Assembly: GCA_009103225.1 (NCBI GenBank)
Contig: RHPI01002272.1
Coordinates: 78,905 to 119,707, forward strand
DNA from: Chlorokybus atmophyticus
Taxonomy: Eukaryota > Plantae > Mesostigma and Chlorokybus algae
Direction: 5' to 3'
DNA: 40,803 nt
The position numbers and the translations under genes were made by a program. Under the pieces are notes generated by a model, which saw only the letters and a program-made list of their open reading frames with translations, did no database searches and had not been told where the DNA came from. Below, in pieces: positions 5,887 to 40,479 of the stretch. Each line of letters opens with the position of its first letter. The stretch's first letter is position 1.

Positions 5887-7134
5887 TCACGGGTTTTGCG
5901 GGGACTTGTCCACCAGACCTGTGCAGGCCGATCCCATCCTTGATAATGCGCGGCTAGGTGGTCGCGCTCGGAGTGTTGCAGCAAGCTGCACTCTTTGACC
6001 ACCATGCTGCAGCGCTTTTGACACAGCCAACCCAAGCATGTCAGAGTCCTTGTGCAGTCTTATGCATGCTACACCAGTCTCAAGCGCCATATTTTGATAT
6101 ACATCGCATTGTTGCAATCGCCGCCGCCGACCTGACATAACGCTCTCCATATCTTTCGCATAATGGTTGTAATAGTCACAGACAAAATGGCAACCGGCAC
6201 AGAATTTGCTATATTTACAGGCGCTATGACACAGAACATTACTCAAAGCCTATGACTGATTACGCGGGCGCCTATTACTCATGTCTGTCCCGGAGGGCCT
6301 ATGCCTCACCGTACTTGCTCTGCATACGCACGACGCCAGTGGTTGAGGGCCATCACGCTGTCGGGGTCGTTGAGCCCCAGCTCCGCTTGCATGTCAGTTT
6401 TTGTAGCAGAGCGTATGTGCGTAAGCACGTGCTTGTAGTCTTGCCGTGATCAGCGCATGTATGTGCAAGTTGGTTTGTGCCAGGTACAGTACATATGTCA
6501 GTCAGTCTATAGTATGTGTTGACGTATCTGCATATGCATGAATTTGTGTATCTGTGTATGCCAGTTAGAACAGCTGTGCGGATCGTGCATGTTTGTCGGG
6601 CTCTTACCCTGATAATGTTAGAGGCAACCATATCCGGCAGCGCCAATATGCCTCACCCCCTACATCTTTGGTGCACATAACAGTGATACAACGGAAGAAT
6701 TGGACATTTGGCATTGGCGGGAATACTGGCAACGACGCCAAGCCGCTGTACTTGCTTCCGTTCTGCTCCTGCTAATGCTGCAAGTCCATTGGCAGATCTG
6801 ACGTTCAAGCACACTTGTTGTGTCCTCTTCCTCCTCCTCCTCTTCCTCCTGCTGCTGCAGCAGAACAGCAACAACCGCAGGAGCCAACTTACTGATAGGG
6901 TTCGACAGCGCCGCCAAGCCGGAGCACCCTGTTCGATCCTGCGTCTCTAGAGCAGTAAGCTCGCCAAAGGACTCCGGCAGCGCCGCCAAGCTGCCGCACC
7001 CGCTCAGGTCCAGCTTTTGCATAGCAGGAAGATTGATCAAGGATCCTGGCAGCACCGCCAAATTGTCGCACTGGCTGAGGTCCAGCTCTTGCAGAACAGC
7101 GAGCTTGCCGAAGAACTCTGGCAGCGCCACCAGC
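5887..7134 (-). pseudogene. 5'-truncated LRR - EP-like fragment (left arm, frameshifted)
   Basis: Inverted copy of 19931-21179 with a 1-bp loss near 6390 (KLTCKRSW vs KLTREAEL). Confidence 0.68.
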
Positions 7135-9346: not shown

Positions 9347-10191
9347 TACCACACTGAAGGCAGCAGCCGCCTTGTAAGCAGCCGCCATGCGTACTCCCGG
9401 TATGTGTCGTACTTGGTTACACTCTCACAACATGAACAATGACAAGCTTGTACACACGTGCCGGCGCGTGTCCGTGCGCGCGCACATATCCATGGCTGCA
9501 TGTGCGTGGATGCGCACGCGCAGGAACGCACACACATGCTCACATGTCAATGTGCAGGCATATGGACAACAGGTTGAAGGTCCCTGAGAAGCTGCGGCTT
9601 CTTGGCGTCCCACGAGCGGCTGGCGGTGTACGAGGACCGCGTCGTGGGCGGTGGGCGACCGCATGGCCGCCAACAACCCGCGGAGAGCCATCATCACCTG
9701 CGGAGGGGGGGACTGTGCATGCACATGCGCACCAGCCTACGTCCTTCGGGCATTTTCGCCCATCCTCAACACTTTCCAGGTCGTAAGTGAGTCCCGCACG
9801 CGCATACATACACGTATATAATGCTATTATAACCGTCATATAACAGTCATGTACATAAGCCACAACTCATACACACTAGTAATGCACCACCTCGGCTCAT
9901 AAACGCTCAGCGCATATGTGGCATGAGTACCTCACAACCACATACGATTGCCTGTCAAGTTGCGGTCCAGCAATGCTACTTCTTTTGTTGCTCACTTATA
10001 CATCCCCTGCGCTACTACTGCAGCCCACCTGATCCAACGGGTGTATGTGACGACAACGGTTTGTTCTACTTGTACTTGGATCGAAGAAAGGATGGTTGTC
10101 AGGCTTTGCAGCTAACTGAGTGCAAGTTAGACCAGATATTCTATTGAATCAGTGGTTTACGCTGAAGCGGTGCAAGGAGTTCAATTGTATG

Positions 10192-10408
<217 letters not shown>

Positions 10409-10841
10409 AAGATGCTGTAGAGCAGCGCTNACAATCACGCATGCGCGCACGCAGGTAGCTTAAACATACACTCGCGCGCGCACACAGCTGCGACCACCAA
10501 TGCCCGCATGGCACGCAGCCACGCACCTCTTCAGGCATGCATGTCCACACGTACATGCACACAAAGAGAGCCACACAGTGTTGCACACATGCAGGTATAT
10601 GCTCAGGTCTCGAGTATGAGCACATCATGTCAGTGCACATTTTCTGCACATGTTTAGACGCATTCAGACATAAACATACATATACATGCAGACTCAAGTG
10701 GACACATATGCAGGCTCGAAGTTCCCGCGTTCGATATACTACAACCTGCAGTTTAATTACCTAAAGCTTATACAAAGTCCCTTTCGTCTCTTGACAAGGT
10801 GGAGTACACCTTGTCAAAAGGCGAGAGGAAGGCACCGCAAC

Positions 10842-11478
10842 TCATGAGTTCCCCTCTATGGCATTCATTTCGTCCAATGCACGTTGTGTTGAAGACGGTG
10901 CAGCAGTTTTGTTATGTTTCTCATACTGAAGCTCCAAGAACGTGTAGTACTCTGGCCGATTTTCCGCCTCAAGGTAATGTCGATTGCCAATAGGCCACTG
11001 CTTCCACAGCTCGAGCCGGTAGTAGTTGGCAATGTCAATGGGCTCAACCATGAGTCGCATCGTGTTGCCTCTCACCAACCAGTCACTGGACTCGCTGAAA
11101 AAATAGGCAGGCAACATGCCATCCATGTACCACTTGTATGCTATACGCCAGAAGTCCCGTGTAACCCTGTTAGGTTGGTGGAGAGGTCATAACAGTACCG
11201 AGCAAGCATTCAATTGCACTAATCTTAAGCTGCAATGCATGTCGGCGGACCTGCGTGCACGGTCGACCCTCCACAAGCGCTCTGCTTGCGGGCTGCCATC
11301 ACTGCCACTGCCACGATATGCTCTGAAGTCGGCGTAGCAGTCTGCCGAGGTCAGCATAAAGGCTTGTATTGTGTCCATGGCGTCTTGTACCTCATTGCGC
11401 CACATGTTAGCAAACTTTGTTTCATGGCTCCGCTGCGCGGCAATACGCGATTCGACCACTCTCCGTGGCTGCAAAGCG
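10842..11478 (-). CDS. EDS1/PAD4/SAG101-type EP domain (2 exons) of NLR1
   Basis: Spliced sequence AMDTIQAF...CYADFRAY...RARR|VTRDFWRIAYKWYMDGMLPAYFF...WLVRGNTMRLMVEPIDIANYYR...HYLEAENRPEYY matches the EP consensus order (YYDxF ... R..L..FW ... LP..F ... W ... YRxLVEPLDIAxYYR ... Y ... RP.RY). Confidence 0.88.
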
Positions 11479-14400
11479 CTGCAAAAATATAATGCACTAA
11501 GACTATGGATGTCATGGTAGGTCAACACTGCAGGTCAATCAGGCTGCAATGCAAACCTGTGTGACATGGGCATGAAGGCCGGCACACTTCCCAAGTGCCT
11601 GACGAGGGTGTCGTACCCAGCCCAGGGTTCCTATTGCATGAGGATGGCATCGAAAGAGCCACGGAGTTACTAACGCAGACATCATGTAAGACTATTCGGA
11701 AAGGCTGCGTGCATGCTGCAAAGTCTTGCTCGTGCATGAAGGTTTGCATAGCGTGGAGCAAATGCACCACCCCCTTTAAACTTGCCTGCTGATCGCCAAG
11801 GGTGAAGTAGCCAAATTTTCGAATCTGCATTGGTACGTGCTTTCTTTCTCCGGGGGGGCGGAAGATGACTGGAACCAACCACCCGGAAAGATTTCCCTCC
11901 TCATAAACCTTGCATAATATGTTCCCGTACTCGTCGTGCGTCCCCGCGCCCACCCAATCAGCTGCGGTCGGCTGTCTCAATGAAAATCGCTCATAATACT
12001 CATCACAAACCACCACCACCTGAAGCGTTATGTTAACAACCGCAGACCAAAGCATGCATATCTGTCATTCTCGCGTGCTTGCTTACTACATAAGCTATGT
12101 AAGATGGGAATGGTTGATGACAGCCACGATGCGCAAGATGTTCTACACTATCAGAGATGATGTGACCATTGGTACCTTTGTGCCATCCTTGAACATCTGC
12201 CCAATAAAAGCTGGCCATGACTGGTACCCAGTTTTGTCATCGATAATGACATGTACATTATCTTGTTGCAGTTGCTCAGCAAGCCTCCACACACGCTTTG
12301 CGTGAAGCTTGTCAAAATGGCAGTAGCTAATGAATACTGTTAACTTGGTCTCTTTTCCCTGTCCGCTATGTGCCACAGCACGCAAATTATTATAAACATG
12401 GTACAGCATTTGCCGCACAAGAGATTGCGCATGGTTTGCGAAGACAGCCATGCAAAACTTACGCAGTAGCAGCATTGTTGACAGAGGCCTCGGCCTTGGC
12501 CTCCGCGTCCTGCTGGTGCTGCTGCAGCACAGCAGTAGCAGCGTTGTTGACAGCGGCCGCGGCCTTCGCCTTCGCCTCCTGCTGGTGCTGCTGCAGCACA
12601 GCAACAACGGCAGGATGTAGCGCACTGAAGTCTTCTGGCAGCGCCTTCAAATGGAAGCACCCATACAGCTTCAGAATGTGCAGAGCCGTGAGCTTGCCAA
12701 AAGACTTTGGCAGCGCCACCAAACTCGCGCACCAGCTTAGGTCTAGCTCACGCAGAGCAGCGAGCTTACTGAAAGACTCTGGCAGCACCGCCAAGTAGTC
12801 GCACGCGCTCAGGTTCAGCGTTTCTAAGTTGTCCAACTTGCTGAAGGACTCCGGCAGTGCCATCAAGCTGCCGCAGTAGCTCAAGTCAAGCGTCTGCAGG
12901 GCAGCGAGTTTGCCAAAAGACTCCGGCAGCGTCGCCAAGCTTTTGCAATTACTCATGTCCAGCGTTTGTAGGGCAGCAAGGTTGTCAAAGGACTCCGGCA
13001 GTGCCGCCAAGCTGTTGCACTTGCTCAGGTCCAGCGTCTGCAGGGCAGCCAGTTTGCCAAAAGACTTCGGCAGCGCCGCCAAGCTGTTGCACTTGCTCAG
13101 GTCCAGCATTTGTAGGGCAGCGAGGTTGCCGAAAGACTCCGGCAGCGCAGTCAAGTTGAGGCTAATGCTTAGGTCCAGTTTCTGTAAATTTATGAGACCT
13201 CCAACAGACTTGGGTAGCATGCGCAACCCGGTTCGGAAGAGATCTAAAACCCGTAGCATAGTGAGCCCGCCAAGCGCTTCAGGCAGCTCGTTCACTTGAT
13301 AAGAATCACGCAGCACCAGAACTTGCAGCGCCTGGAGGTTTCCTATGGACTCAGCCACCGTCATCGAGGCATCATTATGGACGGCTTCTTCTACTATAAG
13401 GACGACCAGATTTTGGCATGCAGCGGCATTGCACAGGAAAGCGCTCAAGGCTGAATAGCGTGGACGTCTCCATTCGAGATAAACCAGCTCTCTACGGACC
13501 CTGTTGGGAGCGTGAAGTGTGCCATCCCAATCAGTTGTGCCAAGGTCTAGCATGCGGAGGCGAGGCATGAAGGCCATGCCACTTGATGTTTCACTCCAGT
13601 TGAGCCCAGACCAGGACACAGTCTCGGCGTGTTCAGAGCCCTGCATACAACCACAGCATGCCAAATATTAGTAGTTCTCATGTGCTCACTTTCAACAGCC
13701 ATGCTGTAACATACTACCAGAACATAGTGTATTGCACGTTCTTGTATTGGATGCATGCATGCAGCAACCTTCAAGCCAACCAAAAGAACATGAGATGAAG
13801 GAACCAAGCTGGAACGTGGCATATAAGCACCTGTTGAAATACGGCGCTCAACTCCTTGGGCAACCATATGTGCTTGGGCGGGTCTGCTCGATTGGCAATC
13901 ATTCGCCCCATGTCGCGAAGTTGGCCATGTACCGAAAAGCAGATATTGCCTTTGAAACTTAATGAGTATGGCTTGTGCTGGTTTGGTCTCCATTTCAAGC
14001 GAATAAGGGACAACTCCACTAGGGTGTACACTTTTAGCGACGCGCGGTTCCCCCACGCCGGAAGCAGGAAGTCTTTATTCTTCCCCAATGCAAAGCAGCA
14101 AATGTCCAGAAACACTCGCTGATATGTGGGCGTTAAAGAATTGTAGCTAAGCTCCAGCGTTTTCCACAACCGGTCATCTTTGGTACGTTTAAGCCCCTCA
14201 GCCTGTTGCAATTGATCCAGTGCAACTTTCCAAAACTGCACATCATTGCTGCTGCGCTTGCCCAGAAAGGAGCCCACGACTTCAAGTGCGAGCGGCAGGC
14301 CGTCGCACGCCTGGATGAAATCCTTGACGTTGGGCTCCAACTCCTCAGGCACTGGATGCGAGCCGAAGGCAAAGTGGCAAAACAGTTTTCTAGCGGGCTG

Positions 14401-15819
14401 AGCGTCCAGCTCTTCCACCTCCTCCACCAAAATATGCTTGTCATGCCCCCTCAATAAGCCGTGCTCGCGAGATGTCACCAGCACACGGCTTCCTTCACCC
14501 AGCAGAGGGTTGGCGGTCTCCAGATTGAAAGGACCGAGCAGAGCTTCTTTTTGAACCTCGTCCCAGATGTCATCAACAAAGAGCAGCACCTTCCGCCCTT
14601 GCAAATGGTTCTGGAGAAGCATCTTTGCTTGATCAATCGCCTTGGCTGCATCACGAAGTCCCTTATTCCCAGTAAGCGCTTCAAGCATATCCTGTTGCAG
14701 TTTAACCAATTCTCCAGTGTCTTGACGCTCTTTCCCGACCTCTACAAAGCAGCAGCTGCGAGGAAAAGTGCTGCACAGCTCGTTGTAAACCGCCTTGGCA
14801 AGTGTAGTCTTTCCGACGCCGCCCATGCCCCAAAGCCCCAGCACGACGACCTTGCTTACAGAGGCAGCAGCACTCAGCTTCTTGAGGACAGCTTCAACTC
14901 GCCGGTCAATGTCCACTGGGTATTTGGCGACATACAACGCATGGCGGTCCAACGTTTTCAGCACGTCGTCCACCACTTTGTTTGCTAAAGCAACTGGGTC
15001 ACTGACAAACAACAGCCAACGTTAGGAAACCACACATGACAACCTGAGCAGAGATGTTCTCCAGCGACAACTCAACTCACCCATTCTCCAGCCTCAGGCC
15101 CGTTGTTCCAAATGCTTTATCCAGCGCAACATCGTATGCAGGTTTGTTCTGGATATACTGCTGCTTGCCACTCAGGCATGCGCTGAAAACAAATCATACT
15201 CGTAACCAGGAACATGGCTACCGGACTGACAAGTGACAGAGTCTAGAAACTGTGCTCACCATTCAATACTTTGCTGAATCTCGGCTTTCAGGCTGTCAAA
15301 GTCATCATCGAAGAAGATGGGCTTAACGATGTTTGCTGAATCCTCCATCATGATGCGCAGCTCTTCCAGGCAGCACCACGAGTCCCCATAGTTACGCGAC
15401 AGAACAGGCATTTTGATGCGAGCGGTGTGTACATTGGCGGTGATCACAGTCCAGGCGTTGTCCCCGGGCTGCAAGCTGAGTTCATCTACGAAGCAGGTCA
15501 AGCTCACTTGTTTGAAGTAATCATGCAGATAATAAACGAAGTTTTTCTTAACGTCCCCTCTATGGCTCAAGAAAATGTCACTGCCAGCGTGAGGATTGGT
15601 CTTCGACAGAACGCAACTGTCTGTGATGTGCAACGTGTGAGTTGACTTGTCAGCGGACTTACAGTGACTGTATTTCATGGTACTTGACGGCTCAAAACCT
15701 GCAACCTTCTTGCTTTGCAAAGAATATGTTACAAGACACATGCGCAGCATATGCACCATCAAAGGCACGCTTGGGTTGTTTGCAAGCTTACCGTCCAGGT
15801 TTGCATTTGGGGCAGACAT
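10842..15819 (-). CDS. TIR-NB-ARC-LRR-SEFIR-EP (EDS1 EP-domain) NLR, apparently intact, 10 exons
   Basis: Manual splice model: 15819-15792, 15620-15260, 15182-15081, 15001-13831, 13640-12463, 12365-12176, 12019-11786, 11630-11557, 11478-11251, 11166-10842. Total 3891 nt = 1297 codons including stop. All introns are GT-AG except one GC-AG, and phases match throughout. The start codon is the least certain part; further 5' exons are possible. Confidence 0.88.
11557..12365 (-). CDS. SEFIR-type TIR-like domain (3 exons) of NLR1
   Basis: Spliced sequence LTVFISYCHFDKLHAKRVWRLAEQLQQDNVHVIIDD...KDGTK|VVVVCDEYYERF...GAGTHDEYGNILCKVY...LVPVIF...HVPMQIRKFGYFTLGDQQ|EPWAGYDTLVRHL follows the SEFIR/TIR_2 pattern (VFISY-H, LA-L, DV-ID, V-VC-Y, G-G--E, IPV-F, P-L, GY--L-R-L). 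Confidence 0.78.
12463..13640 (-). CDS. LRR exon of NLR1 (about 10 repeats of 24 aa) plus Ala/Gln linker
   Basis: Repeated LxxLDLSxCxSLxxLPESFGxL units (72-bp period), preceded by ELVYLEW-type post-NB sequence and ending at the donor GC|gtaagt. Confidence 0.97.
13831..15001 (-). CDS. NB-ARC exon of NLR1
   Basis: P-loop GMGGVGKTT, kinase-2 LLFVDDIW, RNBS-B SRVLVTSR, CDGLPLAL, RNBS-D FLDICCF, and an MHD-position variant VHGQLRDMG. Confidence 0.97.
15081..15620 (-). CDS. N-terminal TIR domain exons of NLR1
   Basis: DIFLSHRG-DVKKNFVYYLHDYF...CFVDELSLQPG...MPVLSRNYGDSWCCLEELRIM...KPIFFD. The Glu at the usual TIR NADase catalytic position (WCxxEL) is retained. Confidence 0.93.
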
Positions 15820-16635: not shown

Positions 16636-18339
16636 CAAAACCAGATCAGTGAATATGTCGAACGGAGTCGAACCTGTCGCCCATCATCCATGTCAGGATT
16701 TTTCACGTGCTTCATGCATATGTCAGGAGACGCCTAGCCCCTAGCAGTGCTATGCCCATGCACAGGTGTCATTGAACCCGCGTTGTATACCTCGTATGGT
16801 ATGGCTCCCGAACCCTTACCATGCTAGGCGTCCTACCAATGATAGCCCACCATGTCATGTCTGCACATGCATCAAGCAAACTAGGCCTTAATGCGGGGAG
16901 GAAGTGGCGGGCTCCAGCCTGGGCCGGAGGTTCAGGCGCATGTCGAAGGTTTGATGTTCTACGATATGAATGATAAGACGTGACCAATTCATGCGCTCAA
17001 GCTTGTTTCCTTGATTTGCCGGCGGCAGGGCCTGGAGTGGTGCGGTGCGGTGCGGTGAGGCGTTGGCGGGCGGGCTGCAGTGTGTCCCCGCCGCCGGGCT
17101 CGGGGAAGGACTTTCTCCTGGATGGGAAGGAGAGCAGCGCAGCAGGCGCCAGCTGTCCGTCTTCAGCGCCATGCTGGGCGGCGCTGCTTAGCAAACGCCA
17201 ACGGCGCAGCCGGGAGGATTAACGTAGATTGCTACAGCTGCAGGCACGGCTTTCCGCAGGTGCTCTACAATGTCTCGCCATTGCTGCCTGCCGTCTGCCC
17301 TCATAATGCTTGTCTAGCTAAACCAACTTCACAGCACGTAAATCTGCTGGTACCGCACAAGTACCACAGGCTGATCAGCGCCTGTGTGTGTTGTTGTGAA
17401 TGCATGCATGCACACACGTGCGCGCTCACTCACTCATACACACACATGTCTTCACAGACATGGACATATGTGGTTCTTGCAGCCATTCAGTGCTTTAGCT
17501 CCTTGCACGAAGCAGCTAAACTGACGGCAAGCATGCTCTGGTATCTAAGTACGTGCACTTCTTCTGTTGTCAATGTCGTTGGGGCCGTACTGCTGGTGGC
17601 AGTAACAGTAATGGCTTCGCGGTATGATGAAGTGGCAGCGCAAGAGATTGTTGTGTACGGTGTAAACTGTGGAACAGATGAACGACAGTCAAAAGTACAG
17701 TCTGCTTCTGTTGTATTGGACGCAACTCACAACGCTTGAACGCCNTCCTCACCCGCCGCGGGAAGTTAAGCTATGGTCAGCAAACGTATACAAAGGAACA
17801 GTGCTCAGCATAGTTGACGCAGTATGTAGATACACTCTCTCCTCGCTGACCATATCCTCTATGGTTTGTTTAACATGTATACACAAGCGTACCACTCTCG
17901 TCTGCGACGCAGCAACTGTTTTGTTTGCGAGCATTTGCCCTGTTTGTTGCGCATGCGCATGCATGGAACGGGCCTTTAATGTGCACACTAGACGTTGTTG
18001 CATGTCAAAGCTTGCCGTGCCAGGTGCTCATCATATATACACCGCTTCTTACCACCAGTAGATACGCTTTGTCGTTTTCTGCAGCTTCACGCCACTTGGT
18101 CAGCGCTGGCATGGCTATCGCTGAACTAAGTGAACTTTGACAGGACTTGGGCGCTCCGCACCCATGAGGCTGGTCTGCACCGCGCTTGGCTTAGCAGCAG
18201 AAGCAGAAGCGCTTGCGCTTGAGATGGGCGGGCTGATGTTACGGAGGCTTCCTGCAGTGCTAACTGCGGCTGCATCCATTGTCACTGGTGCCGGCTACTG
18301 GAACCACACACATCTCAATCGTGGTAGTGCTGAACTCTA

Positions 18340-18690
18340 TCTGACCTCGGCCGCTCCTAACAATGCTGCTATTGCGTAAGTTTCAACTACAGCCTTCTTT
18401 GCATAGCATGTACAAGAATTCTACTCCAACAAATGATGTGACATGCTTTTGACATTTTGCAAGTGCTGTGGCAAATAGCGGACAAAGACAAGAGGCAACA
18501 GGGGCACGGTCCACGACGCCAGAAGCAAAGTCGACAATGTCTACAAGCTACTGCCAGCTCAACATTCGACACAACAGGCAGAGGCTTGTTGAGCAACTGC
18601 AATGGGACGTCATTGTGGACTACAAGAATAATTGCCAGTCATGGCCGGTGTTTATTGGGCAGATGTTAAACGATGGCACAGAGGTACCAG
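18340..18690 (+). pseudogene. Relic of NLR linker end, intron and SEFIR exon 1
   Basis: aatgctgctattgc|gtaagt donor as in NLR1/NLR2, then EAKSTMSTSYCQ...LVEQLQWDVIVDYK..SWPVFIGQMLNDGTE|gtacc; opposite strand to NLR1. Confidence 0.8.
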
Positions 18691-19930
18691 TTGTAACATC
18701 ATTGCTTGTAATGAACGCGCATGGTTGTCATCAACATATCACAGCCTCTTGCATCTCATGTAGTAGCTATAGTAAGGCACGCCTTAAAGACAGCAATGCA
18801 GTGTGACTGGTTTGTATATGTACTCCTGACGGTTCAGGTCATTGGGTCAGGATGACCTGAAAGGTTATCCTGACCTGGTCCTTTCACATATGCAAGCCAG
18901 TGCGAAGTAAATTCTGACTGAGCAGTCTATCCGTGTAAACCACTCACTGCAGGCTTGTGGTCAGACACCCTCACTAGGCGCCCATTGCTTGCAATAAATC
19001 TAATCGTCACTGGTTGATCTGGACTGGATACCTTGCTCCCTGTACCCACTACCTCCAAAAACTCGCGCCGTTTGTACTCTATGGGAGTCTCTTCTACTCA
19101 GCGCATCCAGTACACACTGTGTGCGTGTTATCTACATAATCTGTAAACTTTCGTGTACATGGCTTGGGTGGCAGGGTACACATAAATTGCGTCACGTGTG
19201 CAAGTTGTAGGAGCGGGGTTGTAGCTGCACTGTGCCAGTGGTAATGTGGGCCTCCCCGCGTGGGACCGATGCTACTGTTGGTGCGGAGCTTGGTGTAGAT
19301 AGCGGCCATGGGACGGTTGTCACACCGATTTGTGGAGCTCCTCTCCCCTGGGGCTCAGGGACGTTGCAAACGGGGTTGTACCACCGTCTTGACAATGGTG
19401 TACGTCGTGTTGAAGGTATGGAGAATTGTCAGTCAGTGTTTTACACACGCCTAAAAGCACACGTGCAGCACTGTCATGAGAGTCTGCACTTGCTTGCGCA
19501 GAGAGGGAGTTAATCAAGGTCATGATTATCTCAAAGATTGCATGCGTGCACAAGCAAACACACGCATACATGCGCATGCGCACGCACAGCAGAGCGCGAG
19601 AGGGACGGTGCACAGCCTCTTATGTGACAGACTGCCTCTCTCACTAAGCAGATACTGCCCACATCTGTGCAAGGGTCCTCTTGTACACAAAATTGTGTGA
19701 GAGACGAGGTACAGCGGCGGAGTAGTACTCAGTAACACTCAGGGGACTCCCCTTCAGTCGCTATGTGAAACCATTGACGCCAAGATTGGTGGTGCTGTTT
19801 TGCCCCTTGTTTTGTCACACACTGTCTAACAGCACCGTTGTCACACAGGCCTCCTCTGCCTGACCTACAGGTAGAAAGGGTGAGCACCCTGTTGTTGCTT
19901 GGCATGCATGAAAAGACACACGGCTTGCAG

Positions 19931-21179
19931 GCTGGTGGCGCTGCCAAAGTTCTTCGGCAAGCTCGCTGTTCTGCAAGAGCTGGACCTCAGCCAGTGCGAC
20001 AGTTTGGCGGTGCTGCCAGGATCCTTGATCAATCTTCCTGCTATGCAAAAGCTGGACCTGAGCGGGTGCGGCAGCTTGGCGGCGCTGCCGGAGTCCTTTG
20101 GCGAGCTTACTGCTCTAGAGACGCAGGATCGAACAGGGTGCTCCGGCTTGGCGGCGCTGTCGAAACCTATCAGTAAGTTGGCTCCTGCGGTTGTTGCTGT
20201 TCTGCTGCAGCAGGAGGAGGAAGAGGAGGAGGAGGAGGAGGACACAACAAGTGTGCTTGAACGTCAGATCTGCCAATGGACTTGCAGCATTAGCAGGAGC
20301 AGAACGGAAGCAAGTACAGCGGCTTGACGTCGTTGCCAGTATTCCCGCCAATGCCAAATGCCCAATTCTTCCGTTGTATCACTGTTATGTGCACCAAAGA
20401 TGTAGGGGGTGAGGCATATTGGCGCTGCCGGATATGGTTGCCTCTAACATTATCAGGGTAAGAGCCCGACAAACATGCACGATCCGCACAGCTGTTCTAA
20501 CTGGCATACACAGATACACAAATTCATGCATATGCAGATACATCAACACAAATTGTAGACTGACTGACATATGTGTTGTACCTGGCACAAACCAACTTGC
20601 ACATACACGCGCTGATCACGGCAAGACTACAAGCACGTGCTTGCGCACATACGCTCTGCTACAAAAACTGACACGCGAAGCGGAGCTGGGGCTCAACGAC
20701 CCCGACAGCGTGATGGCCCTCAACCACTGGCGTCGTGCGTATGCAGAGCAAGTACGGTAAGGCATAGGCCCTCCGGGACAGACATGAGTAATAGGCGCCC
20801 GCGTAATCAGTCATAGGCTTTGAGTAATGTTCTGTGTCATAGCGCCTGTAAATATAGCAAATTCTGTGCCGGTTGCCATTTTGTCTGTGACTATTACAAC
20901 CATTATGCGAAAGATATGGAGAGCGTTATGTCAGGTCGGCGGCGGCGATTGCAACAATGCGATGTATATCAAAATATGGCGCTTGAGACTGGTGTAGCAT
21001 GCACAAGACTGCACAAGGACTCTGACATGCTTGGGTTGGCTGTATCAAGAGCGCTGCAGCATGGTGGTCAAAGAGTGCAGCTTGCTGCAACACTCCGAGC
21101 GCGACCACCTAGCCGCGCATTATCAAGGATGGGATCGGCCTGCACAGGTCTGGTGGACAAGTCCCCGCAAAACCCGTGA
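19931..21179 (+). pseudogene. 5'-truncated NLR fragment: LRR, poly-Glu linker, then a divergent EP-like C-terminal domain (right arm)
   Basis: LRRs (LQELDLSQCDSLAVLP, LDLSGCGSLAALPESFGEL) are followed by phase-consistent exons 20288-20408, 20559-20756 and 20843-21179, open to a stop. No TIR or NB-ARC sequence upstream. Confidence 0.7.
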
Positions 21180-26725: not shown

Positions 26726-26966
26726 NNNNNNNNNNNNNNNNNNNNNNNNNNNNNNNNNNNNNNNNNNNNNNNNNNNNNNNNNNNNNNNNNNNNNNNNNNN
26801 NNNNNNNNNNNNNNNNNNNNNNNNNNNNNNNNNNNNNNNNNNNNNNNNNNNNNNNNNNNNNNNNNNNNNNNNNNNNNNNNNNNNNNNNNNNNNNNNNNNN
26901 NNNNNNNNNNNNNNNNNNNNNNNNNNNNNNNNNNNNNNNNNNNNNNNNNNNNNNNNNNNNNNNNNN
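26726..26966. other. Assembly gap (N)
   Basis: Run of n. Confidence 1.
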
Positions 26967-31469: not shown

Positions 31470-31812
31470 ATGGCTGCGTATCAAGGGGAACAGTATGACG
31501 TCTTTCTCTGTCATCGGGGTCCGGATACAAAGAAACATTTCAGCGTGTGGCTGAAGCGCGAGCTTGAAGGGAAGAAGCTACAGGTGTTCCTTGCTGATAG
31601 GTCAATGGGTACGGGAGATCATGCGTCTGAAACAATGAACGCAGCCATAAAGACGGCAACATGCGATCTTGTGGTGCTGTCTCGGGGGTTCTTTGTTAGC
31701 AGATGGTGCATGCAAGAGCTCCGCAACTTCCTGGATTGAGGAAACTGCACACCAGTCTGGTACGATGTCACCCCGGATGACATAAACGCAGAGAAGATCA
31801 GGAACAAAGAAG
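31470..31812 (+). pseudogene. TIR-domain gene of a different subfamily with an in-frame nonsense codon (NLR3 5' remnant)
   Basis: MAAYQGEQYDVFLCHRGPDTKKHFSVWL...VVLSRGFFVSRWCMQELRNFLD*GNCTPVWYDVTPDD, with TGA at 31737-31739, then a donor at 31812. I found no NB-ARC exon downstream. Confidence 0.88.
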
Positions 31813-33135: not shown

Positions 33136-33296
33136 CACGCCTGGATAATATCGTTGGCGATTGGCTCCAACTCCACAGGCACGGTAAGCAATTTGCCAGG
33201 TTCAGTGAAGGCATAATTGTTGAAAAGTTCTCTAGCCGGCTGATCGTCGAGCAGCAGCACCTCCTCCACCAATGTATGCTTCACATGCCCCTTCAG
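33136..33296 (-). repeat. Near-exact about 160-bp copy of NLR2 NB-ARC sequence
   Basis: Identical by eye to about 38809-38968; starts immediately after an N at 33135. Confidence 0.85.
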
Positions 33297-35041: not shown

Positions 35042-35686
35042 TCATGAGTTCCCTTCGATGGCATTCAATTCGTCCAATGCGCGTTGTGTTGAAGATGGTG
35101 CAGCAGTTCTGTTATGTTTCTCATACTGCAGCTCCAAGAACGTGTAGTACTCTGGCCGATTGTCTGCCTCAAGGTAATGTCGATTGCCAACAGGCCACTG
35201 CTTCCACAGCTCGAGCCGATAGTAGTTGGCAATGTCAATCGGCTCAACCATCAGGCGGAAAGTGTCGCCTCTTGCACACCAGAGATTGGACTTGTTGAAA
35301 AAGAAAGCAGGCAACATGCCTTCCATGTAACGATTGTATGCTGAACGCCAGAAGTCCCATAGAACCCTGTCATGTCAGGTTGGTCACCGCATGATGTGGA
35401 GGTCATACCAGTACTTAGCAAGCCGTAAACTGCATTGAACTCAAACTGCAATGCATGTCGTCTGACCTGCATGCGTGTTTGACTGATTTCAAGCGCTCTG
35501 CTTGCGAGCTGTCATCACCGTCACGATATGCTCTGAAGTCGGCGTAGTAGTCTGCAGAAGTCTGCGCAAAGGCTTGTATCGTTTCCATGGCAGCTTGTAC
35601 CTCGTTGCGCAACTTGTCAGTAAATTCTGTTTCATGTTTTCGCTGCTCGGCAATACGCGAACCGCCTACTGTCGGTGATTCCAAAG
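35042..35686 (-). pseudogene. EP-domain exons of NLR2
   Basis: EVQAAMETIQAF...YYADFRAY...KHACR|VLWDFWRSAYNRYMEGMLPAFFF...GDTFRLMVEPIDIANYYRLELWKQWPVGNRHYLEADNRPEYY; intron 35466-35367. Confidence 0.87.
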
Positions 35687-38600
35687 CTGCAAGGGTAAAT
35701 GCATTGAGATTACGCGTGTCATGTGGTAGGTCAACCCTGCATGTCAGATGCCAATCAGGCCGCAATGCAAACCTGGGCTGCATGGGCTGCATGAAGGGCG
35801 GCTTCTGCTGCTCGGTGATACGCGAACCGCCCACTGTCGGTGACTCTGAAGCGCTGCAAAGGTAAATACACTGAGACTACGCATGTCATGTGGTAGATCA
35901 ACACTGCACGCTGAATGCCAATCAGGCCGCAATGCAAACCTGGGCTGCATGAAGGGCTGAACACTTCCCAAGTGTTTGACGAGGGTGTCGTACCCAACCC
36001 AGGTTCCCTATTGCACGCAGAACCAGAAGACCCGCGGAATTACTTAAGCACACATCATTTAAAACTATTTTGACTAGGTGCATGCTGCAAGGTCTCGCTC
36101 GTTCATTGAGAAGTGTGCACAGCTTGGAGCAAATGCACTACACTCTTTGTAGTGTTTGAAACTTGCCTGCTGATCGCCAAGGGTAAAGCAGTTAAAATTT
36201 CCGGATCTGTGCAGGTACGTGCTTTCTGTCTCCAGGGGCCTGGAAGACGACTGGAACCAACCAGCCAGAGCGGTTCTGCTCTTCGTAGACCTTGGTTAGT
36301 ATGTTCGTGTACTCGTCGTGCGTTCCTGCTCCCAATCTGTCAGCTGCAGTCGGCGTTTTCAGTGAAACCGTTCGTAATGCTCGTCACAAGCAACGATCAC
36401 CTGCAATGTCACGAGTACAACCAGCAAACCGATCAATGCATGGCTGTTGTGCAGGCGTGCCTGCTGACGGCATGAGATGCGAGAAGTTGGGATTGTCTGA
36501 TGACGGCGACCACGCGCAAGGTGTTCTACACTTTGGAGACGATGTGACAACAAGTACCTTTGTGCCATCGTTTGAACATTTGACCAATAAGAATCGGCCA
36601 TGACTGGTTTCCAATTTTGTAGTCGACAATGACGTCTATATTGTCTTGTTGCAGTTGCTCAGCAAGCCTCCGCACACGCTCTGCATGATGCTTGTCAAAC
36701 TGGCAGTAGCTGATAAACACAGTCAACTTGGCCTCTGACGCCGCGGACGCTGCCTTTGTAGCCTCTTGTCCCTGTCCGCTATGTGCCACAGCACATGCAA
36801 ATAACCATAAGCATGGTACCTGTAGTACAACACCTGCCGCACATGGCATGTGTGCATGATTTGCAACGAAAGCTATAGCAAAACTTACGCAATAGCAGCA
36901 TGGTTGACAGCCGCTGCCGCCTCCACCTCCGCCTTCGTCTCCCGCAGGTGCTGCTGCAGCACAGCAACAACAGCAGGATCCAACATACTGCAAGATTTTG
37001 GCAGTGCCTTCAAGTGGGAGCACCCGTCCAGTTTCAGCTTTCGCAGTGCAGAGAGCTTGCCAAAGGACTCCGGCAGCACCGCCAAACTGTCGCACCAGCT
37101 TAGGTCCAGCTCACGCAGAGCAGTGAGCTTGCTGAAGGACTCTCCCAGCACTGCCAAGCGGTCGCACGCGCTCAGATTCAGCGTTTGCAGATTGTTCAAC
37201 TCGCCGAGGGACTCCCGCAGTGCCTCTAGGCTGCCGCAATAGCTCAAGTCAAGCGTTTGCAGGGCAACGAGACTACCAAAGGACTCCGGCAGCTCCGCCA
37301 AACTGTTGCAATTGGTCAGGTCCAGCATCTGCAGGGCAGTGAGTTTGCCAAAGTACTTTGGCAATGCCGCCAATCTTTCGCAACTTCTCAGGTCCAGCGT
37401 TTGCAGCATAGCGAGGTTGCCAAAGGATTCCGGCAGCTTCACCAAGCTGAGGCTATTGCTCAGGTCTAGCATTTGCAGCATAGCGAGGTTGCCAAAGGAC
37501 TCCGGCAGCTTCGCCAAGCTGTTGCACTTGCTCAGGTCCAGCATTTACAGGGCAGGTTGCCAAAGGACTCCGGCAGTGCCGCCAGGCTGCCGCAATAGCT
37601 CAAGTCAAGCGTTTGCAGGGCCACGAGACTACCAAAGGACTTCGGCAGCTCCTCCAAGCTGAGGCATTACCTTAAGTCCAATTCCTGAAGGTGCATGAGA
37701 TCTCCTACAGACTCGGGTAGCTTGTGCGAACCGGTTCTAGAGAAAACTAGAGTCTGTAGCATAGCGAGCCCGCCAAGCGCTTCAGGCACATTCATCAGAG
37801 GTTCACAGCCCCGCAGCACCAGGATTTGCAGCGCCTTGAGGTTCCCAATGGACTCAGTCGCCACCATTGAGACATCAACATGAACGATTTTTTCTACAAT
37901 TAGAACCACTAATGTAGTGCACGCAGCGGCATTATACAAGAAACTGCTCAAGGCGGAACAGCGTGGACGTCTCCACTCGAGATAGACCAGCTCTCTACGG
38001 ACCCTATTGGGAGCGTGAAGTGTGCCATCCCAATCAGTTGTGCCAAGGTCTAGCATGCGGAGGCGAGGCATGAAGGCCATGCCACGTAATGTTTCGCTCC
38101 AGTTGAGTCCAGCCCAGGACACAGTCTCGGCTTGTTCAGAGCCCTGCATACAACAACAGCATGCCTAAGATCAGCAGTTCTCACGCGCTCACTTCCAACA
38201 GCCATGCTGTCACATACTCCTGAAACACCGTGGGTTGCACATTTTTGCTGGACCCATGCATGCAACCTTCACAAGCCAGTCAAAAGGACATGAGATGAAG
38301 GAACCAAGGTGGAACGTGGCATACATGCACCTCTTGAAGTAATGTGCTCGATTCCTTTGGCAACCAGATGTGCTTGGGCGGGTTGGCTCGACTGGCAATC
38401 ATTCGCCCCATGTCGCGAAGTTGGCCATGTATCGAAAAGCAGATATTGCCTTGTGCACCCAATGAGAATGGCTTGTACTGGTCTTGTCTCCATACCAAGC
38501 GAATAAGGGACAATTCCACCAGGGTATTCACTTATAGTGCCGCGCCCTTGCCGCACGCTGGAAGCAGAAACTTTTCATTTTTCCCAAATGCGAAGCAGCA

Positions 38601-40479
38601 GATGTCCAGAAACACTCGCTGATAAGTGGGCTCTAGGTAATTGTAGCTGAGCTCGAGCGTTTTCCACAACCGGTTATCCTTGGTACCTTCAAGCCCCTCT
38701 GCCTTTTGCAATTGATCCAGTGCGTCTTTCCAAAACTGCACATCACTGTTGCTGCTGCGCTTGTGAAGAAAGGATCCCACGACCTCGAGCGCGAGTGGCA
38801 GGCCTTGACACGCCTGGATAATATCGTTGGCGATTGGCTCCAACTCCACAGGCACGGTAAGCAATTTGCCAGGTTCAGTGAAGGCATAATTGTTGAAAAG
38901 TTCTCTAGCCGGCTGATCGTCGAGCAGCAGCACCTCCTCCACCAATGTATGCTTCACATGCCCCTTCAATAACTGGTGATTACGAGAGGTCACCAGCACA
39001 CGACTGCCTAACAACACGATATTGAGTCAGTCGTGTAGTGTCAGCCTTATTGTGTCAGTCTCACTGTGTAGGCAATGATCCACTGGTAATGTGCCTTACC
39101 GGTACCCAGCAGAGGGCTGTCTCCCCAAAAATTGCAACAACCGAGGAGGGCTTCTTTCTGATCCTCGCTCCAGACGTCATCAACAAAAAGCAGCACCTTC
39201 TGCCCTTGCAAGCGGTTCTTGAGAATTGCCATTCCATGAATGGAGGTCAATGCCTCTACAGGCTCACTCCCCAGCTTTTTGAAGCATTTGTTGTTGCAGC
39301 TGTACCAGCTTCCCGTTCTCTTTACATGCATCTTTTTCGACCTCTACAAAGCAGCAGCTGCCTGAAAATTTGCTGTACAGGCTGTTGTAAACTGCTATTG
39401 CAAGTGCAGTCTTTCCGATACCGCCCATGCCATGAAGACCCAGCATGATGACCTTGCTTCCAGCGGCAGCAGCATTCAACTTGTTGAGTACAGCTTCAAC
39501 GCGCCTGTCAATGTCCACTGGATGTTTGGCGACTTCCAAGCGGGGGGGTAGCCTTCTCAGCACGCCTGACACCACTGCATCTACTAAAGCAGTCCTGGTA
39601 CTGCCAACAAAGAGCAGATGTTGAAAACATTGCCGCAATCATGATGACAACGGCATCACAACACGAACCAGTGACAACCCAACTCACGGTTATTGATTGA
39701 CCCTCCAGCCCGGTCTGTTAAACGCCTCCTCTACCGCCGTGCGATATTCAAGTTTGTTTTGGACGTATAGGGTCTCACCGCGCTGGCATGCGCTGAAAAC
39801 ACACAACATGCTGGTCATGATGGAAATCCTGCTGATTGCTGGCGAGTCTAGGAGAAAAGGTAAACTATACTGCCAGTACAGTGTACCCACCTGTGAATAC
39901 TTTCCAGGATTATGGCTTTGAGATCGTCAAAGTCATCATAGAAGATAGGCATGATTTGATGTTTCCTGGACTCTCCAACATAATGCGCAGCTCCTCTAGG
40001 CAGTAGCAGGATTTCCCGTATCGACGAGAAAGGACAGGCATCTTGATGCGAGCGGACCGCACATTGGCAATGATGACATCCCAAGCTCCGTTGGTTTCCC
40101 CGGGCTGCAAGCTGAGCTCGTCCACGAAGCAGGTGATTCCAACTCTGTCAAGCATGCGATGCAGATAGTCAACAAGATTGTTCTTGACGTCAGGCCCTCT
40201 ATGGCTCAGGAAAACGTCGCAGGGAGAGTGAGGGATAGTCTTTGACAGCGGCATATTGTCTCCGTCTGCAACACGCAAGTTGACTGGTCAGTGGGCTCAT
40301 GGAGCATTATTTGCTGGAGGGAAATGCCGTCTGGCGATCAGCTGGTGAATAAGGGAGCTGCACAGGATCGATACAAACCGCAACGCACACCAACATGTCA
40401 AGCACATTTGAGTAGTAGTCGTAGTGTTGGTCAACAACCTACCGTTGAGGTTTGCATTGGGGGCCAAAGGTTTGTTCAT
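35042..40479 (-). pseudogene. Paralogous TIR-NB-ARC-LRR-SEFIR-EP NLR pseudogene (NLR2)
   Basis: Same exon order and splice sites as NLR1. Lesions: +2 frameshift near 39955, TAA at 39690-39692, +1 frameshift near 39278, AAA>TAA at 38532-38534, a stop at 37667-37669 followed by frameshifts, indels in the SEFIR exons (near 36570, 36362 and 36195), and a 2-bp loss at the EP exon 1 acceptor (near 35686). Confidence 0.9.

Follow-up and report, generated by a model that had tools for sequence, protein, structure and literature searches.

The EP domain is treated in the literature searched as a defining part of the EDS1 family and as confined to seed plants. How, then, should an EP-like sequence be read when it lies in an alga, at the end of a long receptor-like gene? 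This question is raised by positions 10842-11478, on the minus strand, of a 40,803-nucleotide stretch of the genome of Chlorokybus atmophyticus (contig RHPI01002272.1), which is called the window below. These positions are exactly the last two exons (11478-11251 and 11166-10842) of a gene, here called gene A, with the domain order TIR, NB-ARC, leucine-rich repeats (LRR), bacterial-type SEFIR and EP in our predicted model. A 2026 preprint reported only "short EP-like sequences" in green algae and robust EP homology in seed plants only, and regarded TIR receptor signalling in lineages without EDS1 as unclear (10.64898/2026.05.20.726525). Several questions arise. Is the tail of gene A a genuine EP domain? 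Is the domain older than the EDS1 family? How did it become attached to a receptor of the TIR-NB-ARC-LRR type (TNL), one class of nucleotide-binding LRR receptor (NLR), and what might it do there?

The EP tail of gene A

The tail of gene A is a genuine EP-domain homologue by both sequence and fold, within a family wider than EDS1. The motifs from which the first-pass annotation had proposed an EP domain (VEPIDIANYYR, FW, LP..F, a Trp before VEP, and HY...RP) were confirmed; all of them lie on the minus strand in a single reading frame, far beyond what chance would give. VEPIDIANYYR is located at 11048-11016, DFW, LPAYFF and the Trp before VEP are encoded upstream of it in the same exon (11166-10842), and RHYLEAENRPEYY is encoded downstream. 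The last open reading frame (ORF) matches the Pfam model EDS1_EP (PF18117) with an E value of 1.9e-9 and 37.9 bits versus a cutoff of 23.1. When the EP exon was compared by phmmer with all PDB sequences, the first 13 places were taken by chains of EDS1, PAD4 and SAG101. A family profile built from an alignment of 38 relatives recovered rice EDS1 (E 3.2e-27), Arabidopsis PAD4 (3.8e-23), Arabidopsis EDS1 (3e-20), rice PAD4 (6e-20) and SAG101 (1e-15) from the PDB sequence set, and nothing significant beyond these three proteins.

The fold points in the same direction. An AlphaFold2 model of the last 193 residues of gene A, made with the alignment of 38 relatives, is all helical, with a mean predicted local distance difference test score (pLDDT) of 93.2 and a predicted template modelling score (pTM) of 0.85. 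In a Foldseek search of the PDB, the first 24 matches of this model are all EDS1, PAD4 or SAG101 chains with a probability of 1.0, template modelling (TM) scores by query of 0.48-0.72 (the best to OsEDS1) and a root-mean-square deviation of about 2-4 Å for most; the next match has an E value above 1. Identity to EDS1 and PAD4 in these structural alignments is about 20-25%. Among AFDB clusters, plant EDS1-type entries lead the matches to the EP model. Several entries not named EDS1-type (C5KH53, A0A7S0DJB3, A0A1D3CUH7, A0A1X2HYJ0 and A0A1X2HYB7) also match it, with probabilities of 0.99-1.0 and TM scores of 0.54-0.59; one of them is named transmembrane protein. Judging from such modelled matches, the EP fold may reach beyond green plants.

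A hidden Markov model (HMM) of the EP family, run over the window, gives an EP signal at only four places: the two exons of gene A and two exons, at 35045-35876, of a paralogue, here called gene B. Comparison of the two genes gives a ratio of nonsynonymous to synonymous substitution rates (dN/dS) of 0.095 for codons 37-107 of the last exon, which span the VEP to NRP core and the tail; by this measure the EP core is under purifying selection. We hold this account of the anatomy and homology of the stretch with high confidence.

No lipase-like domain accompanies the EP domain, as the first-pass annotation had claimed for both the gene and the window. Pfam finds no such domain (Lipase_3) on the exons of gene A, on the annotated protein P0001 from this locus or on ten relatives. 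Searches of all six frames of the whole window by tblastn and by an HMM, both based on the lipase parts of seven seed-plant EDS1 proteins, returned nothing (best E values 0.36 and 1.9). Seed-plant EDS1 sequences, used as controls for the lipase domain, score 62-74 bits. Gene A thus has no N-terminal class-3 lipase-like alpha/beta-hydrolase domain of the kind that marks the EDS1 family. Its EP domain is also not full length in the sense of that family: the match to PF18117 is partial, although above the gathering score, and covers profile positions 59-122 of 211. Algal relatives cover positions 6-138 with 32-61 bits, whereas seed-plant EDS1 ORFs from metagenome contigs cover positions 1-203 with 152-209 bits and carry Lipase_3 as well.

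Relatives and the age of the domain

The first-pass annotation had guessed a non-seed-plant source from sequence style, and the source is indeed not a seed plant. The 680-residue protein P0001, which is EukProt/JGI entry Chrsp114S01646 of Chlorokybus atmophyticus, agrees fully with the window (100% identity) across LRR, SEFIR and EP. Chlorokybus is an early-branching green alga of the streptophyte class Chlorokybophyceae. Real DNA underlies the locus: low-depth contigs assembled in two separate sequencing studies agree perfectly with parts of it, one piece extending over an EP exon at 11346-11659.

A profile of the EP exons of genes A and B, searched against 1.84 billion representative proteins, gave 67 matches, many of them environmental or assembly proteins without a name. 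Among these 67, most of them unnamed environmental sequences, no named prokaryote is represented by an EP-like protein. Chlorokybus itself has at least ten EP gene models. The named relatives with an informative architecture are as follows.

P0003 and P0068, Chlorokybus: SEFIR-EP with a hydrophobic N-terminus.
P0004, Chlorokybus: membrane helix, EP, TIR, SEFIR and a second EP.
P0017, P0025 and P0034, Chlorokybus: small proteins with a membrane helix and EP; P0025 is encoded on the scaffold of gene A.
P0005, Elliptochloris bilobata (chlorophyte): a 142-residue EP protein, named EDS1 EP domain-containing protein in UniRef.
P0075, Myrmecia bisecta (chlorophyte; GCA_040144395.1, locus L003, 8001-11254): a 451-residue EP-TIR protein encoded by a spliced gene on a 4.2-Mb scaffold.

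Further Chlorokybus EP models are fragments. Many algal EP relatives have an N-terminal hydrophobic helix. In locus L001 (GCA_030012885.1), at 1712-2215 and 6244-6975, a TIR ORF lies 4 kb from an EP ORF, with a CBM_14 ORF nearby. The EP region of gene A is 71-76% identical to those of P0002 and P0003. Gene A EP is one member of an old green-algal EP family, and the search of related genomes proposed by the first-pass annotation was answered as far as two chlorophytes, Elliptochloris bilobata and Myrmecia bisecta, with TIR, SEFIR and membrane helices as the neighbouring domains. The partner of EP in named family members is a TIR-fold domain (TIR or SEFIR) or a membrane helix; no examined member has a lipase joined to it. 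EP and TIR-fold domains have been joined repeatedly and in varying order, both in a streptophyte alga and in a chlorophyte, and these architectures argue for a working partnership between them.

Where does gene A EP stand relative to EDS1? Metagenome contigs scanned with the pattern [VC]EPLDIAN yielded 57 loci, most of them seed-plant EDS1 genes or transcripts, one stretch reading like the Arabidopsis EDS1 sequence in the PDB. The pattern cannot catch PAD4 or SAG101, and both are absent from the maximum likelihood tree, which has 60 rows including 23 of seed-plant EDS1. These 23 rows form one side of a branch with support of 100/100, and the window copies fall outside it. The two window copies form, together with P0002, P0003 and the second EP of P0004, a clade of Chlorokybus sequences only (100/98). 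When the window clade was held with angiosperm EDS1, the resulting tree was rejected by the approximately unbiased (AU) test (log-likelihood difference 71.7, p 6.8e-5). Gene A is therefore not placed inside the seed-plant clade, as far as that clade is represented by EDS1. A 160-residue ORF at 186-665 of locus L038 (metagenome contig Ga0207433_10314464) contains the core of EP (Pfam 60 bits) and lacks a lipase part; it groups with the algal sequences rather than with those of seed plants.

Contamination, or a recent capture from a seed plant, was considered and rejected, given the GT-AG introns in an algal scaffold, the identity of only about 20-25% to EDS1 and PAD4, the diverse algal family, the tree and the AU test. 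Of the two outcomes by which the first-pass annotation would have been overturned, neither was found: the source is not a seed plant, and nesting with seed-plant EDS1 is rejected in a tree that holds neither PAD4 nor SAG101. Since the source is not a seed plant, the homology is real, chlorophytes have relatives and nesting within EDS1 is rejected, the view that the EP domain predates the EDS1 family is supported. The accompanying suggestion that EP began as an NLR-attached module did not find support. Among the relatives recovered, only the two window copies carry a full TIR-NB-ARC-LRR in front of EP; of those outside the window, some are fragments and the others bear a TIR domain, a SEFIR domain or a membrane helix, and NB-ARC or LRR was seen on none of them. 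The clade that holds the window copies is young, is confined to Chlorokybus and includes non-NLR SEFIR-EP proteins; the fusion to an NLR therefore looks derived, recent and lineage-specific rather than ancestral.

The gene A model and the surrounding window

Gene A was modelled by hand and then by comparison with relatives. It has ten exons on the minus strand, a coding sequence of 3909 nucleotides (1302 codons) with one stop codon, and nine introns, all GT-AG and with matching phases. The gene is apparently intact according to this predicted splice model, whose exons are listed below, all on the minus strand.

15792..15819: exon 1, proposed start at 15819, deduced from an ATG and the GTAAGC donor after it.
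15260..15620: exon 2, TIR domain; Pfam TIR_2 E 3.3e-12, TIR E 1.2e-10.
15081..15182: exon 3, linker between TIR and NB-ARC; AG and GT boundaries, reading frame maintained.
13831..15001: exon 4, NB-ARC with the P-loop GMGGVGKT; Pfam NB-ARC E 7.5e-34, profile positions 3-247 of 248.
12463..13640: exon 5, LRRs plus a linker rich in Gln and Ala; Pfam LRR_14 E 1.8e-35, LRR_8 E 3e-26; within annotated P0001.
12176..12365: exon 6, first half of the bacterial-type SEFIR (TIR-fold); PADLOC bSEFIR E 1.8e-11 for the exon alone.
11768..12019: exon 7, second half of SEFIR; conserved in P0003 (tblastn, P0003 residues 48-206 on 12376-11768) and in gene B (77% identity).
11557..11630: exon 8, short linker; shared with P0001 and P0003, AG/GT boundaries, joined to exon 9 in phase 2.
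11251..11478: exon 9, first EP helices, with the motifs CYADF and RARR; EP-family HMM E 7e-9, profile positions 6-63; inside the pLDDT 93 model matching the EDS1/PAD4 EP.
10842..11166: exon 10, EP core (DFW, LPAYFF, VEPIDIANYYR, NRPEYY) and stop codon; Pfam EDS1_EP E 1.9e-9, EP-family HMM E 7e-47.

As an alternative to the start in exon 1, an in-frame read-through of intron 1 is likewise open. The public model P0001 is contained in gene A, starts within the LRR exon and omits 46 SEFIR codons (11768-11905, minus strand; VYEEGNLSGW to ASLKGV, the end of exon 7). This skip is probably an annotation error, because the omitted codons are conserved in P0003 and gene B. A long (GA)n/(TC)n microsatellite lies at 10181-10450, about 400 bp downstream of the stop codon of gene A.

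The TNL part is canonical in its order: TIR, NB-ARC with a P-loop, and LRR follow one another in one spliced reading frame without an internal stop, presumably as a single transcript. The best PDB sequence matches of the TIR are TIR domains of plant TNLs such as L6, ROQ1, RPP1 and RUN1, and its CLEEL motif aligns with C83-L87 of ROQ1, so that Glu is retained at ROQ1 position 86. We take ROQ1 E86 to be the catalytic residue of the TIR NADase site; gene A thus keeps a candidate catalytic Glu, and enzyme activity is predicted. The second TIR-fold domain, the one preceding EP, is by profile comparison a bacterial-type SEFIR, fitting bSEFIR better than the Pfam SEFIR or TIR models. PADLOC bSEFIR matches residues 375-480 of P0001 with an E value of 3.6e-17 and exon 6 with the 1.8e-11 listed above, versus 0.01-0.04 for ThsB TIR-like, and with exon 6 alone Pfam TIR_2 and SEFIR remain under their cutoffs. 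The paralogue P0003 matches bSEFIR at 1e-19 and exceeds both of these Pfam cutoffs (SEFIR 41 bits). For the domain preceding EP, the best PDB sequence match is a Bacillus SEFIR domain.

The rest of the window contains a second copy of the gene and the remnant of a different one.

35045..40260, minus strand: gene B, tandem paralogue of gene A with the same domain order (TIR, NB-ARC, LRR, SEFIR, EP); 70-80% DNA identity to gene A.
18137..18806, plus strand: remains of a P0003-type gene (membrane-anchored SEFIR-EP), with no EP part; tblastn of P0003, residues 1-37 at 81% and 48-126 at 57% identity.

The NB-ARC and LRR parts of gene B contain in-frame stops, and the reading frame changes within its LRR and SEFIR parts. 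No stops interrupt the EP exons of gene B, the last of which (35045-35368) is 82% identical to that of gene A. Downstream of the remnant at 18137-18806, the EP-family HMM finds no EP signal. The stretch 19931-21179 on the plus strand has none by this HMM in six frames with E values up to 10 or by tblastn with 67 EP proteins. Fragments of related genes are located at 18137-18806 (+), 19932-20213 (+), 6861-7133 (-), 31497-31793 (+) and 33141-33296 (-), and consist of a P0003-type N-terminus with a degenerate SEFIR, two LRR pieces, a TIR-like piece with a stop, and an NB-ARC piece. To judge from these sequences, the window is a cluster of NLR, SEFIR and EP genes with much wreckage. Two runs of N, at 2219-2756 and 26726-26966, are assembly gaps.

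Possible functions of the tail and their meaning

What could an EP domain do at the end of a TNL? We favour the explanation that a SEFIR-EP signalling unit has been captured by a TNL, where it would receive or relay what the activated receptor produces; for this reading as a whole we estimate a probability of about 0.5. In the proposed mechanism, a complete SEFIR-EP unit, which also exists in free-standing and probably membrane-anchored form, would have been captured behind the LRRs. Upon activation and oligomerization of the receptor, the N-terminal TIR, with its Glu aligned with ROQ1 E86, would make an NAD-derived product, and the SEFIR domains would associate with each other. The EP domains would be the receiver, either gathered by oligomerization or coupled to EP paralogues that are anchored in the membrane and encoded nearby. 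With the face on which the counterparts of EDS1 R425, Y473 and R490 are kept, they would bind a TIR-derived nucleotide or a partner and then relay the signal. EP would in this manner do the job of the seed-plant EDS1 heterodimers while being tied to a TIR-fold domain by fusion, not by a lipase-driven dimer. This chain of steps is tentative, and we rate it somewhat below even odds.

The residues of the putative binding face can be read from alignments, with EDS1 and PAD4 positions given in Arabidopsis numbering and their roles in ligand binding by EDS1-PAD4 taken from published work (bioRxiv 10.1101/2022.04.01.486681; PMC6377607). Gene A keeps the equivalents of EDS1 R425 (the Arg of RARR), Y473, K478 and R490. 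Throughout the 38 relatives the equivalents of Y473 and R490 are aromatic and Arg, respectively, in 38/38, and that of R425 is Arg in 22 of 32 filled rows; the K478 equivalent is Lys or Arg in 16, and the R493 equivalent is Arg in 14. In EDS1, Y473 stacks on the adenine and R425 contacts a phosphate (bioRxiv 10.1101/2022.04.01.486681). Chlorokybus sequences fall into two types at this face. The membrane-anchored proteins P0017, P0025 and P0034 have Arg at the position of EDS1 R493 (RPxRY, as in EDS1 and PAD4) and no Lys of the K478 type, and the SEFIR-fused proteins P0001, P0002 and P0003 read RPEYY or RPDYY with the K478-type Lys kept. Chlorokybus seems to have two EP classes, perhaps partners.

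Several observations weigh against the reading that we favour. Gene A has Tyr at EDS1 R493, Met/Asp at K440/K441 and Leu at H476, as well as Met at PAD4 R314, Ser/Asp at K379/K380 and Val at Y383. The check on cavity-lining basic residues that the first-pass annotation had suggested is thus divided: R425 and K478 have kept equivalents, and K440/K441, R493, PAD4 R314 and K379/K380 have lost theirs. Because the R493 equivalent is lost and R493 is essential in Arabidopsis (PMC6377607), binding of the phosphoribosyl nucleotides pRib-AMP/ADP by gene A EP in the seed-plant manner is unlikely. The EP of gene A corresponds, by profile coverage, to about the first two-thirds of the seed-plant domain, the last third being missing, and the gene has no lipase domain, the driver of EDS1 dimerization; together with the R493 loss, these two absences would speak against a receptor of pRib-AMP/ADP like that of seed plants. 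The first 36 codons of the last exon have a dN/dS of 1.06 between genes A and B, and gene B, with its disrupted TNL and SEFIR parts, is a pseudogene. The junction of TNL with SEFIR-EP is predicted and rests on the splice model, because the annotation of P0001 begins inside the LRR exon. In a structure model of P0003 (SEFIR and EP), the EP part is confident and the SEFIR part poor, with pLDDT of 37-80. Finally, the preprint on bSEFIR describes defence and a SEFIR-SEFIR contact mutant, with no enzyme activity demonstrated (Millman et al., 10.1101/2022.05.11.491447).

NLRs with integrated domains are familiar from angiosperms, an example being RRS1 with its WRKY domain. Gene A resembles these receptors: a canonical TNL is followed, behind its LRRs, by additional domains foreign to NLRs, and these also occur as free-standing genes, here P0003 and P0068. 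The SEFIR-EP tail could be an integrated bait, a copy of a host signalling protein (the free membrane-anchored SEFIR-EP) attacked by pathogen effectors, whose modification would switch the TNL on; the tail would then sense and do no signalling. Besides the position of the domains and the existence of free paralogues, one of which has left its remnant in the window, this account fits the nesting of the window copies in a young clade with free SEFIR-EP genes, the dN/dS near 1 in the N-terminal part of the last exon, and the loss here of several ligand-contact residues that the membrane-anchored paralogues keep (RPxRY). However, the EP core is under strong purifying selection, a weak objection since a bait must also resemble its model, and fusions of EP with TIR-fold domains recur in several architectures other than NLRs and extend to a chlorophyte, which suggests a working partnership rather than baiting alone. 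Unlike the angiosperm receptors, gene A has integrated domains that are themselves immune-signalling domains, no paired helper or executor NLR is seen beside it, and no pathogen or effector is known for Chlorokybus. We consider the bait unlikely, although it is the best of the competing explanations.

Another possibility is that EP is an adaptor only, a helical module for protein-protein contact without small-molecule binding, which would pair with another EP to place the receptor at the membrane or to enlarge the assembly, as SEFIR-SEFIR and TIR-TIR contacts do. Seed-plant EP domains contact each other and helper NLRs (PMC8813719; PMC12856790), the hydrophobic helix of many algal relatives, among them P0025 on the same scaffold, would suit such a role, and most of the seed-plant ligand-contact residues are not kept in gene A. 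Nevertheless, the best-conserved positions of the family include the equivalents of the adenine-stacking Y473 and the phosphate-contacting R425, and the repeated fusion to TIR-fold domains suggests a link with their products. Such a pure adaptor seems to us rather doubtful. That the TNL and SEFIR-EP are separate or decaying genes in a wreckage-rich cluster, mis-joined in our model into a long ORF without function as one protein, is improbable: the broken gene B, the SEFIR, LRR, TIR and NB-ARC fragments and a public model that covers LRR-SEFIR-EP alone would fit it, but all ten exons are stop-free with canonical splice sites and matching phases, the annotated model already links LRR to SEFIR-EP, the EP core is constrained, and the P-loop, the TIR Glu and the LRR repeats are intact.

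The favoured reading of a captured signalling unit can be set beside the known systems. With the EP of seed-plant EDS1, PAD4 and SAG101 (PF18117), gene A shares the helical fold, the motifs YYDxF, RxxLxxFW, LPxxF, VEP(L/I)DIANYYR and HYLxxxNRPxxY, the four retained residues named above and a setting within TIR signalling. Unlike that family, it has no lipase-like domain and hence no LLIF helix, its shortened EP is fused to an NLR and SEFIR, and it does not fall within the clade of seed-plant EDS1. For the domain that precedes EP, the best-matching model is that of the bacterial SEFIR anti-phage proteins (10.1101/2022.05.11.491447); those carry other C-terminal parts, whereas the SEFIR of gene A is internal to a eukaryotic, intron-bearing NLR gene. 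Closest are the lipase-free EP proteins of green algae (Chlorokybus P0003, P0004, P0017 and P0025, Elliptochloris P0005, Myrmecia P0075), which have the same truncated EP core; the window copies differ from the membrane-anchored ones in having no Arg at the EDS1 R493 position. In the literature searched there is no description of a TNL-SEFIR-EP protein and no mention of Chlorokybus together with SEFIR.

A wider proposal would make EP the ancestral receiver of TIR-type signals in green plants. The two Chlorokybus classes, the anchored one with RPxRY and the SEFIR-fused one with RPEYY and the K478-type Lys, would pair as EDS1 does with PAD4 or SAG101 and bind a nucleotide made by TIR or SEFIR; the TNL-SEFIR-EP protein would be sensor, signal maker and receiver in one chain; and the seed-plant EDS1 family would go back to an EP core of this kind that was lengthened and, by fusion, gained a lipase-like dimerization domain. 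Taken as a whole this is speculative, and we think it unlikely to hold in all its parts.

What do these results mean for the EP family? EP homology in Chlorokybus is robust by profile and by fold, and in the predicted gene model it is found on one polypeptide with TIR, NB-ARC, LRR and SEFIR. The association of EP with TIR would date from before the split between green algae and land plants, or else a transfer between them would be required. The link of EP to TIR signalling thereby becomes testable outside seed plants, and there are now concrete proteins with which to ask what EP bound or contacted before its fusion to a lipase-like domain, and whether it reads TIR products outside seed plants.

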